Below, in pieces: positions 4,047 through 32,924 of a stretch of 64,000 bases of DNA. Positions within the stretch are counted from its first letter, which is position 1. Each line of letters starts with the position of its first letter. The notes beneath the pieces are model-generated. The model worked only from the letters and a program-made list of their open reading frames with translations, did no database searches and had not been told where the DNA came from. A program made the translations under genes and the position numbers. The stretch comes from Trichosphaerium sp. ATCC 40318 (Eukaryota > Protista > Tubulinea). The DNA is taken from assembly GCA_038496445.1 (NCBI GenBank), contig JALMLS010000179.1, forward strand, positions 372,001 to 436,000. Reading direction: 5' to 3'.

Positions 4047-7000
4047 ATGTCTGGCTCTCCGTCACAGGCCAAAGACATTGACCTCGGTGTAGGCACGTCG
4101 TCCAGCGACAATACATCAGATCATGACAGTGGCTCGGAGTATGTAGAGACAGAATCATCACAAAGTGATAGTAGTATGAAAGCTGACATGTTAGCTGAAG
4201 AGCAACGAGCAGCTGATCTCGAAAGAGAGCAAGAAACTGAACAACACGAAACTCGTAGTGCAGATGACACTGAAAACAACAGTGCGGTGTATGACAATAT
4301 GACTGGGATATCTTCTAAAAAGAAGACAGTAGAAACTGAACTCATAATTAGTCCCAAAATGTCCGATAAATCACAAAACAATACCGCTATGAAAAAAGGG
4401 TCTAGGCGAATACTTAGCACCTCAGACAAGTCTGTTAACTCGAATAATTCGAGTACTACACTTCCCCCGGTTACATTACCGAAGTCCGCGGGTGATTCAC
4501 AAAAAATCGGAAGTGACTCTTCTAGAAAGAAGAAGTCCAAACACTCTAAAAATAAACGTCATACATCTGACAAAATAAAAGGCACCCTTGGGCTAATACC
4601 CAAGGTTTATGATAATAAGCGTTCTACAATCGATTATTGGTATGCTCTTAGCACTAAAATTGCAAAGAAGCACCGTATTGATGATGAAAATCTCGCAATT
4701 GCGTTGAGATTGAGCATCAAAAATATAGATATTAGCGACATGCTTACTTCCCTCCCTCTCACTGCTACTTCAAAACAAATTTATGAAGCTATCATAGAGG
4801 AGATAGTAACTCCGCTGGATAAAGCGCAAACTGTACTACGTTTTCGTGAGTGTGTTCACATGCAAGATGAACCTTGCAGGAAATATATGAGGCGACTCAA
4901 CGAGTTAGCCATTTACGCAAACAAATCAGTCTCCGAGATTACGGAACAATTTGTGATCGGTCTAAGAAAAGACCTGCAGTCTCAGATATACGCGAAATAT
5001 CTAGAGTACAAAAAAATGTTTGACCAACAGTTAATAACGGCTGAGGCGTATAACAAATGTGTTCTGCAAAAGGCAGAGAAAAAAGAGATTCAATTTAATC
5101 TCTACAATCTCAATACTAACTTAAGTAGTAATGCATATACGTCGTCTTATCCTAAGAGCCGTAATCCTTACGCTGGTAATCTGCAAACAACTAATACGTT
5201 CTCTAACTATGTCACTAAACCCGTACAGTCAGAAAAGGCACGTGACCTTGAAAAAGAAATTGCAAAATTAAGGCAAAAAATTGAAAAACTGACTTCTAAT
5301 AATAGAAAGTACGATAACAATAACCGTAACAACGATAGACGCCCACAAAAGCAACAGCGTAACAACTATCGTCAAAATAACGGTCAACGTGACTGGAATA
5401 ATAACAATCAACGTTACAACAATGACAGAAATTTCAACAATAATCAACGCAATTACAATAACAATCAGCGTAATTATAATAACCAACAAGGTTACAACAA
5501 CAACCAACAAGGTTACAACAACAATAACCAACGTGGTTACAACAACAATAACCAACGTGGTAACAACCAACGTGGTTACAACAACAACAACAATAGTCAA
5601 CAAAGACCAATGTTTATTAACGGCAAAAAACTATGCCGTCATTGCGGTGAAGAACACAAAAATGGTGAAGAATGTCCACATTTCATCACCTGGAAGAATA
5701 GTTTAGTGGATACACGCAAGAAGAATATCGAAAACGCCAAAAAGAGTAAGTCTTCTAATTCGACTACAAACTCTAATGTTGCTCTTTCTTTAGCGCCAGT
5801 ACCACCGCCACCACCGCCACCTCCAAGTCCACCTTTGAATGATCATTCGGTCGACAGTGATTGTGCTCCATTTATACCAGATGACATATCACCACCAAAC
5901 TCTCCCCGTCAACAAAGACGTGCAACAGTACATAAAGTTCCAACAATGAAAATGTTTGGACCAAAAGTACAGAAACTTCTCTACAAATATGAATCTCAAT
6001 CAATCAAAGAACATATTCCAAGCGCCGGCACTAGAGCACTCAGCCTAGATGGCGAAAAGCTTCCTATAGTCACTATTATTATGGCTGGTGTTAAGGTTGA
6101 AGCCATGATCGATTCTGGCTCTACCATCTCTATCATCAGTAAGTCGTGTATCAGAGATATCAATCACGCAATCAAGAGAAATAATGGTAAAGCACCAAAT
6201 GGCAAACAACGTACTCGCCTTGAATACGATCACAGTAAGAAAATACAAGTCACTAGTGACATTCTTAATGACGTTTCTGAATGTACTTTAGGTCTGTTGA
6301 GTACTGGCATAGAATTCATGGACGACTTTCTCTATGAGAACTTCCATGTCATGAAAAAACCAAAATTCAAAGTTGTACTAGGTATTAATACCTTGATGCG
6401 TACCAATGCCATCTGTGATTTTAAAAACGGTATCATTTACTCAGGCGGCGAATACATGACCGTACCTACCTTTGGTACTAAAGCAGCACAGTCCTTCATA
6501 ACAATTAAGAGCGAACCAAGTAGTGAAATTACTGGTAACGCTGCTACCAACTCAAAAACAAGTAGTGAAGACGTCAGTTCTCCAATTCCAATGGTAGATG
6601 ACGATAACCTTCCTACTAGTCCCATGGATGACCTGCAAAAAGAATTCATTGAAGGAGAATACAACGATAATATTCAACTTCAGTCTGAAACCTCATCCAA
6701 CAATTGCGATAAAAAACCTCTCCAAACGCAAAAAGATATTGAAGGCTTTATGGATACAATTGACACCAAAAAGATTCCAATGCACACGGCAGAGATCCGC
6801 TACGAATCAACCGACATCCGAAAGACAGCACTGGTAGCCGACCAATCGCACGAGATCCGCTACACCGACACCATGGGTGCTTGTTTCACTTTCAAACTTC
6901 CTACCCTCCCTCGTAACTCTCAGATAACAGTTACTGAAGCACAAATGTTGCGCAGAAACAACAATGCCAACATCACGGTTCTAGGGTTAGGACAAACCAA

Positions 7001-24582: not shown

Positions 24583-27500
24583 ATGAGTTCCAATAAAACA
24601 CACATCTCTTTTCTCTCCCAAAATCTCTATCTAGGTAGTATTTCTAACAAATTATGTGAACTAGTTGAAGTTATAGAAGAAGCTAACCCATCATTTCTAC
24701 TTTTCCAAGAAGCCCATATCTCCAAAGAGGACTTTAAGTATGTAGAACGTGACCTTAAAAAAATCCTCCCAAATTACAATATCTTTTCCAATCTTCAATC
24801 CAAAAAAGACATCCTATTAGCGTCCATTGTTAAAAAGGAAGCAATTTAAAAAAAATCTAAAGGCACAAATTTTATGTTTGCAACAGGTCTTGAAGAAATG
24901 AATGACCAAGAACTCTCTGACACTTGGAAAGACATTTCATGTAAAACTCCTCCGATGGGCGGTTTAATTACACTCGTCAAAAAAGATTTTTGCCAAAGTT
25001 TAGTTCGTCCTAAATGCTCTAATTTTTTCGCTCTCCCACTAATTATAGGTGCTAAAGCTGATGTTAAAGAAAGGTACTTAATTATTAACGTACACATAAG
25101 CCCTCAAGATGGTAGCCCTCGTAAGGCTCATTTTGAATTTCTATCTAACAAAATCCCAGAGTGGTGTAACAAATATGATATTCCACCTTCAAATATTATA
25201 TTAGGTGGTGATTGGAACACTCCTCAAAAAGAAGAAGAAACGGAAGGAAACGTACCTAAATCTACTAAATTCCTTCACAATTTCTGTGCTGAACTAAACC
25301 TCTTTGATCCTAGCTTTTTCAGAACTCCTTGCTTCTCTCACACAAGCTCCTCAACTAAACAAAAAGCCAGAATAGATTATTTTCTGATAGGCAAAAATAT
25401 CGATCTGGATACGGTGGCCTCTAGCATCGTTTCTGAAGAACCTTTCTATTCAGATCATAAAAGGATAACGTTAAATATTACCTTACCAATTCAACACGCT
25501 CCGACACCAGAACGCAGCGAGGTAGTCATTGAAAGACTCCTCCTCAGTAATGTAAGTGACAAATACCTAACTAAACTTTTAAGCTGGAACAACCTAAAGA
25601 CACACCTTGGTACAGAAACGTTAGATGTTTACGAGGAAGCTCTTTCAGAATCAGATACCTTTTTTGCGAAAGAAAAATGGAACAAATTCCTTTCTCGTTT
25701 TACCAAAAATCTTTACATTTATCTTGACAAAAAATTAGGTCATAACTCCAAACTTAGAATAAATCTTACTGAGAAAATCATTAATAATTTCTCACTCAAC
25801 AACGCTAAAAACCTATTTAATATCATCAAACATGGAAATTTTCTCATTAAATCGAAAACTAACATTTCACAAGGAAAATTAATCCTCGATGATGTTATAA
25901 CGAATAAAATAGGAAAATTTATAAGTGATTTTGATGATACGATTCTCATAGATACCGCAGAATCAGTAGTAAATTAAAAACGGGATTTTCCTCTGGAATC
26001 CTGTTAAATTCCGTGTTTTTTAAGGATTTTAGCGGAATTGTGGAAAAAATCCCTAAGCAATCTGAATTTTCGATTGGATTTTTGATGGGATTTCTGCTAT
26101 ATTCCATTAAAATAAGGAATTCCTTGGGATTTGTAAAAAAATCCCAAACAACAATATTGGCAAATGTTGGCAGCATATCAATGGGAATAATTGAAGGGAT
26201 TTTTAACGGAATTCCGTATGGATTTTGTAGGGAATTCCCTTGGGATTTTTAATGGAATTCCATAGGGATTTTTAACGAAATTCCATATGGATTTTGTGAG
26301 AATTCCTTTGAAAAATATTTTTGGTGAAAATTCAAAATTATTCATTATTTCGACAACTATCAAAGCCTTACCTAACCAAGTTTTTTTTTAGTAAACCACA
26401 TCGTCACCCTTTTATTGGTGTAGAAAACCAATGGATACAACGAAAAGACGTTTAATCAAAAAGTAAGCGAGATAAGTATTTTGGTGATTTTCGTTAGCAG
26501 TGATATTTCTATATCGCTTACTAATCTGTTTTGAGGCTTTTAAAGCATTTCAAAGGCCTTTACACACCACTAAGACACGCATTTAGGGCATTAATCTCAA
26601 GTACGTTGTTTTTGAAGGTTATTTCCATTTAATTTATCAAAAAACTACTCTTTTCTTATTTTAGCTTCTACGAATGCGTTATTAGCATTTATGATTGCGA
26701 TACCAGGTGCGATAAAATTCTTGGCCAAAGATTGGAAAGATTTGATGAGTTTGACCTGTACACAATAGCGTGTGGAACATTTGCGTTTCGTAACTAAATT
26801 ATCATTGGTAAATAAAACAAATTTTGTGCTACAAGACTTGATGTAAAGTATTTCGAGGTAATTTGTTTGGAATTTCATAAAAAATCCATTGGGAATTCCG
26901 TTGTTAATCCTTAAGGAATTCCGTCTGGATTCTTTAAGGAATTCCATCCGGATTCCATAGGGAATTCCATTCGGATTCCATAGGGAATTCCGTCCGGATT
27001 CCATAGGAATAAAGGAAGAGATTTTCCGCTTATAAATCCTTAGGATTTTAAGACGGAATCCCTTAAAAACCCTGATTTAAATTTACCACTGAATATACAA
27101 ACTTCGCCTCTGATGCCATGAAAAAACTAAAACTCTTAAAGGACCAGATACGTGAAGAGATAAGGAAAAAACATATTGACAATCTAACTGAAAAAATAGT
27201 TAAAAGTAAATCTAAATCCCTCTTCCATAGATACAGACAACTAAGAAATATGAAAGACATTAACTTCCCTCAGTCGTTCACCACAGAAGAAGACAAAATT
27301 ATCACATCCAATGAAGATATGAATAACAAGATAAACTGCAAATGGAGCAAAATATTTGAAAAAAGAACTAAACCCACTTCAAACTTAGATAATCTAACAC
27401 CTTTCTCACAAGAACCAATAGTAAACAACACCCACTTTAACGCTGATGATATCAATGAAGAGGTATTTATTAAAGCAGCGAAAAAAATTGCCTCATACAA

Positions 27501-30456
27501 AGCTCCAGGTACCTCTAAAATCGACCCTAAAATATACAAACTGTTACCTATCAACGCTATCAACATGCTAACCAATTTATTTAAATTCTGTTATAAAAAT
27601 TCCTTCATTCCTGACGAATGGAAATATAGTGTCACAATTCTACTACCCAAAAACGGAAACCCACAAGACGCGTTAAATTTCAGACCAATTTCTCTCTTAA
27701 ATTCTCTTTACAAAGTCTATTCACATATCATTACAGATATCCTCGATAAAGCAAATAAATCTAACAACCTACTTAGTAAAAATCAATTTGGGTTTATCAA
27801 AGGTAAATCTATTCATATGGCTCACAAAAAACTATTGTCGGCAATCAAGGACGCCAATAAAAGAAAAAAGAACCTTTTCGCCCTTTTTATAGATCTCCGG
27901 AAAGCTTATGACTCCATCCCCCACTGGGCTATAGACAATATTTTTAAATGGCATGGTTTCAACAAAAACATTAGAAAGGTCATCCTATCCCTTTTTAAAG
28001 GAATAACTACTACCATTAAATCTAAAGTTGGCGAAACAGATATTCAAATTAATAGAGGTACCAGACAAGGTGACATTATTTCTCCTCTTATATGGAATTT
28101 TTTTATTAACTCGCTTCTCCTACGAATGGATTCGTCTAACCTTGGTTATACATTCAAAAACGGCGAACGCATCACTGTCATAGCCTATGCTGACGATTTA
28201 GTCATTCTCTCTGACGATATGAAGAAACTCCGTAAATTATTCAAGCTTCTATCCTCTTTTTGCTCTTTCTATGAAATTGACATTAACACAGAGAAATCTG
28301 CACTACTCGCTAACAAAGACGTACTGGCAACGGAAGCGAATATAAACCCCCTAAAATGGAATGGAACAAAAATTCCTATTTTTAAACCTGACGAATCATA
28401 CAAATATCTAGGAATACTAATCAATTTAAATCTTGATTTTTATGATCATTTTAGTAAACTCCATAACTCATTTGTTTCAACTTTAAATCTAATTAATACT
28501 AATTACTTTACCACAGCCCAAAGAGTTCGCATCATTAACCAAGTGGCAATAGCTCGTATTAGATTCACACAAAATATAATTAACATACCTTACGACATAA
28601 TCGAATATTGGGATGATCTGGCTGCTAAAATAATCAAGAAAAAACTCAAGATTCAACATCAAGCGTACAATCATAGAGTCCAATCAAAACAAGTTGGTTA
28701 TGGTCTTCTCTCGCTATGTGACACACAAATTCAAGGATACGTCAAAACGGCGCTCAAAGATAATTTCAATAACTCTGACGGCCCTATCAATGACTTTGCC
28801 ATCAAATACGATGTTAAAGTCTGTAAAAAACTTTTGTCTAACTCCACTTTCGTTTTAAAGAATATAACTTCTGAAAACAAAGTTTCTCTTAAAATTAACC
28901 CTATCAGTTCTGAACACTTCACTAGATTTACCGATAAACATGATGGTATTCCAGTTATCGCCACTGATGGCAGTGTTAAAAATAACGTTGCATTTAGTGG
29001 AGTAGCTCTTTCTACTAAATACAAAAAATGGCTCAAAATGAAAACCTGTTTCTATAACGACTCCAATGGAGCTGAACTTGAAGCCATTGAGCTCGCTCTC
29101 AAAGTTACGCCAATTAACTCCCCTGTTATTATTATCACTGACTCTCTTAACTCCAAAAATTGGATTGATTCTTTTCCTCTCTGGCCTCCAAACAAAGTTT
29201 TTAAGAATCCATACTCCCATACGATAGACAGAATTAGAACTATTATTGATAAACGATTGGCAAATACCGATATTATATGGTACCCTAGCCATACCCTTGA
29301 AGATAAGTCAAAAAAGCCTCTAGTCAAACGCGCTGCCTCTTATATAAAAAAATATTTTTCGTCTAAACTTATTCCTTTGGCAGTCAAACTTAACAAATAT
29401 GCTGACGCTATTGCATCTAGTGCGTCATTTAAAGCCGCTGGAAAGTGTCTCCTAGGATCCAACATCCACCCTATAGGTACCAAAAACTATTGTCTGATCA
29501 ACAAAAATACAAAACACCCGGTATATCATGATCCTTGGAAGCTATTAAAAGAAGAAGCAGAATTAAATAAGATTAATTTTATTAACAACATTTCTAGTAA
29601 CCTAGGTAGATCTCGAACCAACTTGGACATCGTAGCATCTAAAATAACGACAGAAAACATTTGTTCTGACAAAATAGCTGACTTTGCCTTTAGAGTTAAA
29701 CGTCATGCGTTATATATCAACAATACACGGTATCATAGACAATCAAGCTCTTGCAAATCCCTTTGGGATAGAAGAGAGCGAATTAATTGTCCTAACCCTT
29801 TTTGCTCACTCTGTAATAACGATTCTCCAGAAACTTTCCTTCACTTTATACAATGTACTTATAACCCTTTCGATATCAGGTCACACATGTTCTATCACAC
29901 CATCCGAATATACCAGGAAATCACAGGTGACCTTATTCCCTCTGCGGAAGCTGACGTTAAAAAATTTAATTTCTACCCTCTTATTCGCAAACTGTACAAA
30001 GATAACTATTTTGTTTCTAGTTCGTTTCGCCTCCCCTACAGAGTTAAAGAACCGCTATATATCAAAATCCAAGCTGGAAGGAGTCTGGAATCTTTAACGC
30101 ACTGGTCCTGGCTAGATGAGACTATTGACGATCTCTGTCTTGGTGAAATCGTCGAAAAGTTCTTAGACAGATATGGTTTCTCAGGCTCAACTCCCAACTC
30201 CTTTTCTTTTCGTGCCGCCCAAGGTTGGATTACTACTGATGCTGTGGACTCGATATCTAGCCTTTTCTCGATTAGTAGGCACCTAGCGCGGGTCTTTGCT
30301 ATCAGATTGAACAAGGTTTTTGTTTGTCTTCTCTACAAACGTTATATCTGTAGGTGTAAGTTGGATATCAAGCACAAAAAAGATATGGGAGCTTACCTTA
30401 GTCCGCGTATTTTGGCGCTGGCCAATCCCAAAATCCGTAATATTCTCGGTCTGTGA
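24583..30456 (+). pseudogene. Non-LTR ORF2 (AP endonuclease, RT, RNase H, Zn finger), disrupted
   Basis: APE: SQNL..FQEAH..GGL..NVHI..GGDWN..RIDY..SDH. RT: FRPISLLN..QFGF..DLRKAYD..GTRQGD..AYADD..YKYLG. RNH: ATDGS..AELEAI..TDS..WYPSH..NKYAD. Zn finger: CSLC..HFIQC. One in-frame TAA at 24847-24849 and a nested insertion at 25964-27091; removing the insertion restores the frame (AEYTNFASDAMKK). Confidence 0.92.
25964..27091. mobile_element. Non-autonomous TIR DNA transposon (1128 bp, CAGT termini, 3-bp TSD AAT)
   Basis: Left end cagtagtaaattaaaaacggg; reverse complement of right end cagtggtaaatttaaatcaggg; aat on both flanks; subterminal GGAATTCC/GGATT arrays at both ends. Confidence 0.9.
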
Positions 30457-31046
30457 GTTTCATTTCCCTTTCCCTTCTTTGTTTTCCTTTTTCTTCTCTT
30501 TTCCTTTTCGGTTGTTTTTATCTTTTGTTTTTTACTAAAAATTTCCTTTTTCCTTGCCCTTCGTTCTCCTTCAAAGATGGATTGATCTCTGCGGAGAAAA
30601 ATGGCTGTTTCTCCCTTGACTGCTGGAAACGTGATTCCGCCGGACGTGAACTCAACTTTGGATATCTAAGACTGCTTTTGGACTTTGGCCTCTTTCTCTA
30701 CTAGCGACTTGATTTTCCTTCAATGTTCTCTGTTCCCTGGACCTCTTCTTCTATCCCTATCTCTTTCTGTTTCCCCCTTTCCCCCCTGTTTTTTTACATC
30801 AGTCAACCCCTATGGCTGCGTCGACACTTTCAGAGTATTACTCTTCCAGCGCCTTTTAGGCCTTAAGAATTTGTTTGACGTTAAAAAATAAATAAATAAA
30901 TAAACTAATGGATAACTTACAACCCACAAAAGGGCTACCTATGGGCACAATTACCTCGAACAACTAGGCTTAGTGCTAGCATGAAATAGCGTTATTTCAT
31001 GTCAAACCCACAAAAAGAGAAGCGAGAGATTGCGTCGCACGTTGTA

Positions 31047-31134
31047 TCTTAAGGTAGCCAAACCCTCGACACATATACAGACGCCATCATCGTCAATTAA
31101 ACGACTAATACTACCTTAAGGGAGTCATAGTTAC
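31047..31134. other. Two inverted short matches to LSU rRNA H69-H71 (not an rRNA gene)
   Basis: tcttaaggtagccaaa (+, 31047-31062) and gtaactatgactcccttaaggtag (-, 31134-31111), compared with conserved eukaryotic 28S GTAACTATGACTCTCTTAAGGTAGCCAAA. Confidence 0.8.
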
Positions 31135-31668
31135 GGTTGTTTGTTTAAATTGAATAGAAGGAACATGGTGACATGATTGCCTCTAACTCTTAACGGGTAG
31201 GTGGCCCGTTAACAAGACTATAGGTGATGCTCTCGCAATAGTATGGATAAGCTTACAGGATTAAAACTAGAGTTTTTTGTAGAACACTTTTTGTTGTGGT
31301 TTACTTTTCACTTAATTTTCACTTTTTTTTGTTGTTTTTTGCAACAAGCGTATAATACAGACAAGGTCCTTGCAATGATAGGCTCAAAAGGAAAAATGAA
31401 GCGTTGTTCCAACAGCCAAGCGCCACCAAAGATTAATGCACGTCTTATCTACAAGGTTTGCAGAACAAATTACATCGAACACGTGACTTTCTCAAAAATG
31501 AGTTGGCTACCAAATCACTTTACGTCAAACTTTTTTTCAAATACCACTGTAAAAGCGTTTCGAAACGCAAGTGTACCGTGGCTACCAAAGGTCGTTTCAC
31601 ATTCCTTAACGCTTTTAAGGTACAAAATTAATGTTAGCACTATTAACAGTAGTGACACGCGTGCTGTA

Positions 31669-32924
31669 ATGGAAGATCCAAGCCATGATAAACACTCAAC
31701 GAGTGAAAAAGGTGGCAATTTATATTTTGGCAAGATTTATGCCAAGAAAGGTAAATGGCCCTTATTCATATTTTATTACAACAACTGACGTTTTCAAGCA
31801 AAAAACAGTGAAAAGTATGGAACAAATAACGAGGTAAGACTCAATTTTATCATAAACGCTCTCACAATAGCGCTCAGTACTCCCTGCAGCGAAAACCTTT
31901 ACTCAATAAGCCTCAAACAGCTCAAGAACTAGAATCATACAGTTATACAGCTTCTACGCTTCTAATAACTATATTATTCATCCAAGCGGCGATAGTCATA
32001 ACTCACATTGTGTTTTCGGTTCAATGGCGTTACTTTGTTGGTAAACATAAAAAAAAGAAACCTCAACGTACTTTAAAACTAATATAAACTATACAGGCAT
32101 TGGCGTAGGAAGCTTCTCAATAGTCTACATAATTTTATTATTCGCAGGTACGCAAAAGAACATTCAACCCTTTCCACGCGAGGTCTTCTCAAAATTATCA
32201 GTATCTAACGTGTTTTGACGTCAGTTTCCATAAAACACTGTTTTTTTTTTGACACATTTTTTTAACTAGTCAAGATGCCTCTATGGAACGCTAAAAGTGG
32301 TGCTGTTCGTTGTAAAAAGACAATGTTTGTTCTTTTATGGGTTTTAAATCTTATTATTCTGGCTTGGATCATATTTTCAGTCGTAATCCATGCACATTTT
32401 AAAGACCCAAAGCCGTCTTCTTTACCTTCTTCTTGTGCGAGAACAACAAACTGTGTTCGTATGACGACAGACAATACTACAGATGTTGACGCAGAAGGAC
32501 TCGAGATACCTTATATTAGAACATCTCGCTCTCGTTTAACAAACTACGCACGTGATTATTTTGAGAACTTGTTCCAAACAAGGAAAGTACAAGAAATCCA
32601 CTCAAATTCCACAGCATTTTTACATTACAGGACTGTTTCACTTGGGTATGCACGATTCGTTTTACACGTGTATAATTAACTGAAATAGATTTGGATTCCC
32701 TGACGATACGTATCTTCTTCTAGAGTGCGTTGGAGATGACGCAGTGATAAATTTTCAGGTTGGTTATTTGTTTTTGGATTTGTTCCTGTTTTAATGTTGA
32801 CGTTTTTTGGTGTTAGGGAGAAGCACGAGTTGGTATTTCAGACCTTGGTGTTAACAAAGAAAGGATAAAAAAGTTCTTAGAAGCAGTTTTAAAAGAAAAT
32901 TTCGTTGTTGAAGATTGCACGTGA
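31669..32924 (+). CDS. DUF1499-family membrane protein
   Basis: Hydrophobic helices, then CARTTNCV, FGFPDD and ARVGISDLGVNKERI (DUF1499 signature). 5' exons uncertain. Confidence 0.75.

Follow-up and report, generated by a model that had tools for sequence, protein, structure and literature searches.

Why should two short stretches resembling one site of the large-subunit ribosomal RNA (LSU rRNA), facing in opposite directions, lie outside any ribosomal DNA (rDNA) in the genome of the amoeba Trichosphaerium sp. ATCC 40318? This question is raised by a 64,000-nucleotide (nt) stretch of contig JALMLS010000179.1 (assembly GCA_038496445.1, forward-strand positions 372,001 to 436,000), which we call the window and to which all positions given here without a contig name refer. 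A preliminary description of the window had treated 30922-31242 as a single hairpin-rich non-coding cassette. We found that these limits instead take in three unrelated, juxtaposed elements: the tail of a long interspersed nuclear element (LINE), one repeat of a miniature inverted-repeat transposable element (MITE), and a small RNA gene read from the minus strand, within which both rRNA look-alike stretches fall. On the sequence, the best explanation overall, and the one towards which we lean, is an orphan RNA polymerase III (Pol III) type-3 small RNA gene whose product would carry an antisense to the helix 70 (H70) segment of 28S rRNA. That positions 31236-31012 of the minus strand hold a genuine Pol III small RNA gene is, from its signals and its conservation, very likely, and the gene is well delimited and probably functional. 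It is unusual in that sense and perfect antisense copies of the 28S H69-H70 site occur together in it. The coordinates of its parts and of its neighbors are collected in Table 1.

The reference for the rRNA comparison was a full 11.5-kb rDNA unit located in the organism's own genome, in which the 28S was read at the site. By direct reading and by script alike, TCTTAAGGTAGCCAAA at 31047-31062 on the plus strand is an exact match to this 28S (16/16), and the reverse complement of 31111-31134 matches it in 23 of 24 positions just upstream of the 16-mer site. Both elements map to the H69-H70 site, their targets overlapping by 10 nt (CTTAAGGTAG), and within the locus they lie 48 nt apart in opposite orientation, 24 nt sense and 16 nt antisense. 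The preliminary description had reported the two stretches without naming a transcribed strand; both are real, and on the minus-strand RNA the 16-mer becomes the antisense and the 24-mer the sense, or mimic, element. When the region was compared with the 11.5-kb unit by blastn-short, these were the only significant matches (E 2e-6 and 5e-4). A search of the 70-Mb assembly for the exact 16-mer finds it in 16 rDNA copies and in just two other places, the window locus and contig C251, and the earlier statement that it stands outside any rDNA context thus holds. Given the significant matches and the one other non-rDNA occurrence, the resemblance is not due to chance. A simple collinear match to the organism's own rDNA, which would have made the region an rDNA pseudogene or fragment, was not found against the 11.5-kb unit. 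The H71-like extension claimed for the sense element is marginal: on this side the collinear resemblance runs into an H71-like hairpin and an AUGAUGG motif at p ~0.03 against shuffles, while the extension on the antisense side is not significant (p ~0.10 against shuffles). This flanking resemblance is compatible with, though not proof of, an origin by inverted capture of ~45-60 nt of rDNA.

What delimits the gene is a set of external signals that it shares with other Pol III genes of this genome. On the minus strand, the upstream box AAACCACAA, which resembles the Dictyostelium upstream sequence element (DUSE) or a proximal sequence element (PSE), is followed by a TATA-like box and then by the first G of a short terminal stem. 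Every U6 gene inspected has the order AAACCACAA, 26 nt, TTTAAAA(A), 23 nt, U6 5' end, and the AAACCACAA box also stands upstream of the U6atac and RNase P genes of the genome, which were identified via Rfam. The distance from the DUSE-like box to the TATA-like box is 27 nt in the window and 25-26 nt in U6, U6atac, RNase P and the C251 copy, and that from the TATA-like box to the first G of the terminal stem is 23 nt in both copies of the gene, equal to the distance from TATA to 5' end in U6. The gene thus displays three sequence features of this promoter class, namely a DUSE-type box at about -55 to -60, a TATA-like box at about -25 to -30 and at least four T at the 3' end; the T-runs of the U6, U6atac and RNase P genes are T7-T9. 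Because of the 23-nt TATA spacing and the T run, we place the predicted transcript start at G31236 and its end in the U run 31016-31012, for an RNA of ~221-225 nt. The termini are paired, and on the plus strand the pairing halves appear as a 7-nt inverted repeat common to both copies (GCGAGAG at 31022-31028 and CTCTCGC at 31230-31236). Genome-wide, the combination of box and TATA was matched 43 times, with the C251 copy among the 43, against 13 matches in a reversed control (~3-fold). The gene contains no open reading frame (ORF) of 30 amino acids (aa) or more. A 181-aa ORF at 31243-31788 on the plus strand begins inside its promoter region and is without a Pfam domain; this ORF is probably not a gene.

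Table 1. Features of the RNA gene and adjoining elements (window positions), with identity between the window copy and the C251 paralogue.
Feature	Position	Strand	Identity between paralogues	Remarks
APE-type LINE (endonuclease remnant, reverse transcriptase, CCHC)	25168-30905	+		split by insert 25963-27090; (AAAT)n tail
Terminal inverted repeat of multicopy MITE-like element	30905-31010	+		contains hairpin 30980-31001 and echo 30932-30944
Small RNA gene (predicted, ~221-225 nt)	31012-31236	-		predicted start G31236; T5 run 31016-31012
DUSE/PSE-like upstream box AAACCACAA	31294-31302	-		also in C251 paralogue
TATA-like box TTTTAAT	31260-31266	-		TTTAAAAA in paralogue, like U6 genes
Terminal stem, 5' half GCGAGAG	31230-31236	-		pairs with 31022-31028; invariant in both copies
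5' domain			74/115 (~64%)	
Hairpin 1, 8-bp stem, loop CCACCUA	31190-31212	-		loop and stem kept in paralogue
Hairpin 2, 21-nt block, CAUG/CAUG inner stem	31157-31177	-	20/21	
Sense (rRNA-like) element, 28S H69 3' side through AAGGUAG	31111-31134	-	20/24	23/24 to own 28S
Middle of 3' domain, small hairpin and 5' arm of long hairpin	31063-31110	-	47/48	
Antisense element UUUGGCUACCUUAAGA	31047-31062	-	16/16	perfect 16-nt complement of 28S in both copies
3' end with stem			24/25	
Terminal stem, 3' half CUCUCGC	31022-31028	-		
T5 run, Pol III-type terminator	31012-31016	-		5 nt after stem here, 0 nt in C251

A single-copy, untranscribed and unconserved sequence had been named beforehand as a sign of scrambled rDNA filler; the gene has one paralogue in the genome (on C251, locus L028, positions 4701-4927 of that locus), on a different contig and between unrelated flanks; no further paralogues were found in the genome. 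Homology between the two copies extends from promoter to T run only, the surrounding genes being unrelated, and neither copy shows target-site duplications or a tail. Paralogous downstream genes with a common regulatory region were rejected as an explanation since there is no homology beyond the cassette. The promoter spacers are identical in only 9/26 and 16/32 positions, with the boxes and their spacing kept. Divergence within the transcribed part is uneven: the 5' domain has changed at about a third of its positions, and the 89-nt 3' domain is ~98% identical. The sense element of C251 retains ~19 of 24 matches to 28S. The antisense element has stayed invariant where the sense element of the paralogue has drifted, and we therefore take the antisense to be the likelier working part.

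Both copies appear to be constrained as structures. In hairpin 1, both partners have changed in five of the eight aligned stem pairs, which nevertheless still pair, and two of its pairs in C251 are G.U on the minus strand only (A.C on the plus strand). Covariation, proposed earlier as a check, is thus visible as compensatory changes in one hairpin and in a comparison of two copies; homologues outside this genome were not found in two metagenome scans. The hairpin 2 block occurs nowhere else in the genome beyond chance at up to 3 mismatches. The consensus fold is more stable on the minus strand than on the plus strand (-49.5 vs -38.5 kcal/mol), and each copy folds alone to the same predicted architecture, in which the terminal stem encloses two hairpins in the 5' part and, further on, a small hairpin and a long 3' one. 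In essence, this predicted long hairpin mirrors H70 in antisense: UUGGCU forms its apical loop, and its 3' arm holds the remainder of the antisense element. A duplex between the antisense and 28S was computed at -34 kcal/mol. As had been suggested, the two rRNA-like elements can also pair with each other, in a 10-bp sense:antisense helix of -16.7 kcal/mol, but this pairing is disfavored: it is ~11 kcal/mol worse than the best fold, and C251 has a change in it that is not compensated. On these energetic grounds, and because the flanking resemblance is weak, we rejected the idea that the RNA works as a long foldback of sense on antisense.

From what is established here, namely the layout of the gene, its promoter class, the way in which the two copies are conserved, their compensatory changes and the matches to rRNA, we propose the following course of events. 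The gene would be transcribed by Pol III from an external small nuclear RNA (snRNA)-type promoter made up of the DUSE-like and TATA-like boxes, and transcription would end at the T run. The RNA would comprise the terminal stem, a fast-evolving yet structurally conserved 5' domain and a near-invariant 3' domain partly of 28S sequence, in which a 24-nt sense copy running from the 3' side of H69 to H70 would be followed 48 nt later by a 16-nt antisense to the overlapping H70 segment (UCUUAAGGUAGCCAAA). Through this antisense, part of it in the apical loop, the RNA may act in trans on LSU rRNA or its precursor, in the manner of a pairing or chaperone RNA of small nucleolar RNA (snoRNA) style at the heavily modified H69-H71 segment, though it has neither C/D nor H/ACA boxes. 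As for the sense copy, it would more likely be a relic of the inverted rDNA capture that made the 3' domain than a working part. That the RNA works by pairing with 28S at all is a tentative proposal, which we hold to be somewhat less likely than not. A bolder form of it, in which the RNA would found a new class of ribosome-directed RNA and the H70 antisense image on its hairpin loop would dock onto the nascent or mature LSU at the intersubunit face, seems rather unlikely; here the RNA would assist assembly as a chaperone or regulate subunit joining, with none of the boxes of small nucleolar ribonucleoproteins (snoRNPs). In outline, these proposals agree with the antisense/guide or mimic non-coding RNA put forward among the options of the preliminary description, which is supported by the promoter-to-terminator gene and its conserved paralogue.

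Several observations weigh against a functional orphan gene that pairs with H70. The TATA-like box of the window copy (TTTTAAT) is the weaker of the two. Neither a conserved C box nor a D/D' box is present: the window copy is without any CUGA, its sole C-like heptamer is not conserved, and in both copies the guide is followed by UACAACG, where the C/D class needs CUGA, so that the absence of correctly placed C/D boxes noted earlier is confirmed. The features of H/ACA RNAs are likewise absent, as the 3' end reads ...CUCUCGC and then a U run, with no ACA, and the complementarity is contiguous, not bipartite. In the predicted fold about half of the antisense is taken up by pairs inside its hairpin (mean unpaired probability 0.52), and the 131-nt core does not fold significantly better than shuffles (z -1.2 and -1.7). 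The comparison comprises two sequences, with the covariation resting on one hairpin, and two exact-pattern metagenome scans found no homologues in environmental DNA. Finally, the ~98% identity spans the whole 89-nt 3' domain, a constraint that goes beyond what pairing would account for; in a comparison of two sequences, such near-identity may stem from gene conversion as well as from purifying selection.

The last point leads to the reading that the locus is an ordinary or decaying orphan Pol III gene that captured an inverted scrap of rDNA and carries it idly, its 3' identity stemming from recent gene conversion. The sharp boundary between ~64% and ~98% identity is like that of gene conversion tracts, and only two copies exist, with no homologue elsewhere in the two metagenome scans. 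We nevertheless consider this reading unlikely: the copies lie on different contigs between unrelated flanks, the conserved blocks and the covarying hairpin of the 5' domain point to selection on the RNA, the promoter boxes and their spacing are kept although the spacers have fully diverged, and the 16-mer is still perfect to 28S in both copies. The promoter, terminator and compensatory changes also make it unlikely that the sequence is scrambled rDNA filler, as the preliminary description had allowed. Could the sense copy instead be the business end of the RNA? Together with the H71-like hairpin it might act as an rRNA mimic or decoy that titrates a protein or a snoRNP whose usual binding site is this part of the rRNA, the antisense serving only to mask or regulate it within the molecule. 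The 23/24 sense match in the window copy, the marginal continuation of the collinear resemblance to the hairpin and AUGAUGG, and the possible 10-bp helix between the elements are what one might expect of such an RNA, but within the 3' half it is the sense element that has changed most (20/24 between copies), the would-be helix has the uncompensated change and is costly to force, and the H69 stem cannot form because its 5' strand is absent. On balance we hold a mimic to be quite unlikely. It is improbable, too, that the gene is a small-RNA precursor whose long 3' hairpin is processed to ~21-nt RNAs against rRNA or rDNA. A ~53-nt hairpin of roughly 20 bp, with the antisense on its 3' arm, is indeed predicted in both copies, but its stem is interrupted by bulges and includes several G.U pairs, the gene with its terminal stem and the conserved hairpins of the 5' domain has the anatomy of a stable structured RNA, and nothing indicates Dicer-type processing.

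The readings that tie the locus to mobile elements, as a decoy or target for R2 or I-PpoI nucleases, a retrotransposon 3' untranslated region (UTR) or an rRNA-derived short interspersed nuclear element (SINE), draw on two facts. The shared sequence of the two elements is exactly the R2/I-PpoI cleavage sequence, and the 1112-aa reverse transcriptase (RT) ORF of the adjoining LINE (27118-30456, RVT_1 E 1.6e-37), whose closest solved-structure relatives are R2 proteins, ends 560 bp upstream. The LINE itself, however, has an N-terminal part with weak matches to 'endonuclease-reverse transcriptase' domains of the apurinic/apyrimidinic endonuclease (APE) type (PF14529/PF03372), reproducible in two copies, and an independent 3' fragment on C13 shows homology up to, and ending at, the (AAAT)n tail at ~30884-30905. 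Because of this APE remnant and the tail end in C13, we regard the LINE as APE-type, not R2-type, and as stopping ~110 bp before the rRNA-like sequences, from which it is further separated by the MITE repeat. No retrotransposon of the R2 type, with a restriction-like endonuclease (RLE), and no intron was found at or linked to the TTAAGG/TAGC site, either in the neighboring LINE or in the 16 rDNA copies, all of which are uninterrupted there (16/16), and no 28S-like words lie near the related LINE copy on C605. These results, namely the APE remnant, the A-rich tail common with C13 and the intact rDNA sites, led us to reject the gene as an R2 3' UTR or R2 target. Nor does the cassette behave like an rRNA-derived SINE, with only two copies, external promoters, unrelated flanks, no tail and no target duplication. 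Any such reading is therefore highly improbable, and the connection to R2 and I-PpoI suggested earlier falls away.

The nearest full copy of the LINE, on C605, has a 1400-aa ORF that is 63% identical in protein and aligns on both sides of the insert at 25963-27090, from which it follows that the LINE in the window reaches back to 25168. The insert is 1.1 kb long and belongs to a family of more than 15 copies at 92-98% identity with GGAATTCC-rich terminal arrays. From a reading of the translation, the LINE also carries an RNase H-like DGS...E...D motif in addition to its CCHC knuckle. The MITE repeat between LINE and gene is present in at least 14 copies at 75-89% identity, some of them as inverted pairs, all ending at a shared edge, ...GTCAAAYCC. 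The first copy of a ACCCACAAAA direct repeat is internal to the MITE consensus, for which reason the repeat was rejected as a target-site duplication, and tRNA-targeted insertion was rejected because none of the MITE copies or examined loci has a tRNA in its vicinity. The neighboring element also accounts for parts of the original cassette. Of the two extra hairpins described there, both exist, with 31190-31212 belonging to the RNA gene and 30980-31001 to the MITE terminal repeat; the supposed weaker echo of the rRNA sequence at 30932-30944 is inside the MITE and unrelated, and that at 31184-31200 is not preserved in the paralogue.

Some further features of the rDNA and of other promoter-bearing genes came to light in the same genome. 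The 16 assembled rDNA units lie mostly 1-3 kb from contig ends (C6, C34, C75, C125, C166, C284, C293, C46 and C177), and those on C481 and C469 are arranged as inverted pairs. The LSU match is 3621 nt long on C592 and C284 and ~3840 nt on C481, so that some units carry ~220 additional bases within the LSU. On C309, C350 and C369 there are several copies of a 23S sequence of bacterial or organelle type (TCTTAAGGTAGCGAAA), some of them arranged as inverted pairs; these parts of the assembly are of organelle or bacterial kind. Behind a AACCACAA/TTTAAAA promoter stands a family of at least five genes (L061 and L062 at C50:30414 and C50:146302, and L076 with three copies on C169), whose RNAs of ~110-135 nt have paired termini (GAUGAG...CUCAUC), a T-run and no Rfam match at the gathering threshold. 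Two identical copies of a promoter-bearing gene of ~160 nt (L055 and L072, at C24:10688 and C125:180034) end in a T-run and belong to no Rfam family. On the minus strand of C4 (L046, ~221000-222000), ~250 bp separate the gene for RNase P RNA, which has the DUSE/TATA promoter, from that for RNase MRP RNA. Another promoter-bearing gene of ~115 nt (L048, C6:737806, plus strand) contains CUAAACCCUG, a word that would fit a telomerase RNA template for TTTAGGG; short mixed TTAGGG/TTTAGGG arrays occur in the genome, e.g. at C73:266803-266950.

Whatever its mode of action, the locus is a well-delimited addition to the unannotated non-coding genes of Trichosphaerium, its promoter, start and terminator having been placed, and a tempting but mistaken link to R2 and I-PpoI is removed. 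Nowhere in the large subunit is modification heavier than in the bridge-forming H69-H71 segment. Should the RNA prove to be expressed and to contact 28S, it would represent a case of long antisense pairing to this segment by an RNA without any snoRNP hallmarks, and of an RNA built by capture of its target's own sequence in both orientations. This would bear on the origin of guide and chaperone RNAs and on ribosome assembly in Amoebozoa, the organization of which is, to our knowledge, almost undescribed outside Dictyostelium.

How does the predicted RNA compare with known classes? A search with the covariance models of Rfam 15, as the preliminary description had recommended, left both copies unmatched at E<=10, on the plus and the minus strand alike. 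Among the candidates rejected for want of an Rfam match are U3, SRP, MRP, RNase P, 7SK, Y and vault RNAs and ribozymes, RNase P and MRP being found elsewhere in the genome. Telomerase RNA was set aside because the gene has no template-like repeat; the contig ends show rDNA and no clear telomere arrays. In yeast, the segment that the antisense would pair with carries m5C2278, Am2280/Am2281 (guided by snR13) and Gm2288 and matters for 60S stability (PMC4174444). The box C/D RNAs of the snR13 type, guides for 2'-O-methylation at the AA of UUAAGG in H70, pair with the same rRNA segment. They differ from the predicted RNA, which is without a conserved C or D/D' box, follows its guide with UACA, not CUGA, measures ~225 nt, has a Pol III promoter and holds its 16-nt guide inside a hairpin. 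A narrow pattern search of the genome, which is not conclusive, found no canonical guide-plus-CUGA for the H70 site.

Comparable in some respects are the pairing or chaperone snoRNAs of the U3, U8 and snR190 type, which act without modifying and which have C/D boxes, defined families and lengths of 140-330 nt. With these the predicted RNA would share its size range, a long stretch of complementarity to pre-rRNA and an element similar to the partner strand within the rRNA; we know of none that targets H69-H71 or holds both sense and antisense of one rRNA site. Transcription by Pol III would have a precedent in this group, plant U3 being a Pol III transcript (PMC8351944). Within the genome, the other promoter-bearing genes sampled resemble the gene in promoter class, paired termini, T-run and lack of an Rfam family; they differ in that no sequence similarity to it was found, and among the promoter-bearing candidates examined it alone has a significant rDNA match. 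In dictyostelid amoebae, non-coding RNA genes of both Pol II and Pol III have a DUSE at a distance of ~60 nt upstream (PMC7919456), and the AAACCACAA box resembles it. The gene also resembles the Pol III type-3 genes of Amoebozoa (such as U6, U6atac and RNase P RNA): although the predicted RNA matches none of these families, and RNase P, MRP, U6 and U6atac are located elsewhere, the gene has in common with them the upstream box, both spacings and the T-run terminator, as measured in this genome.

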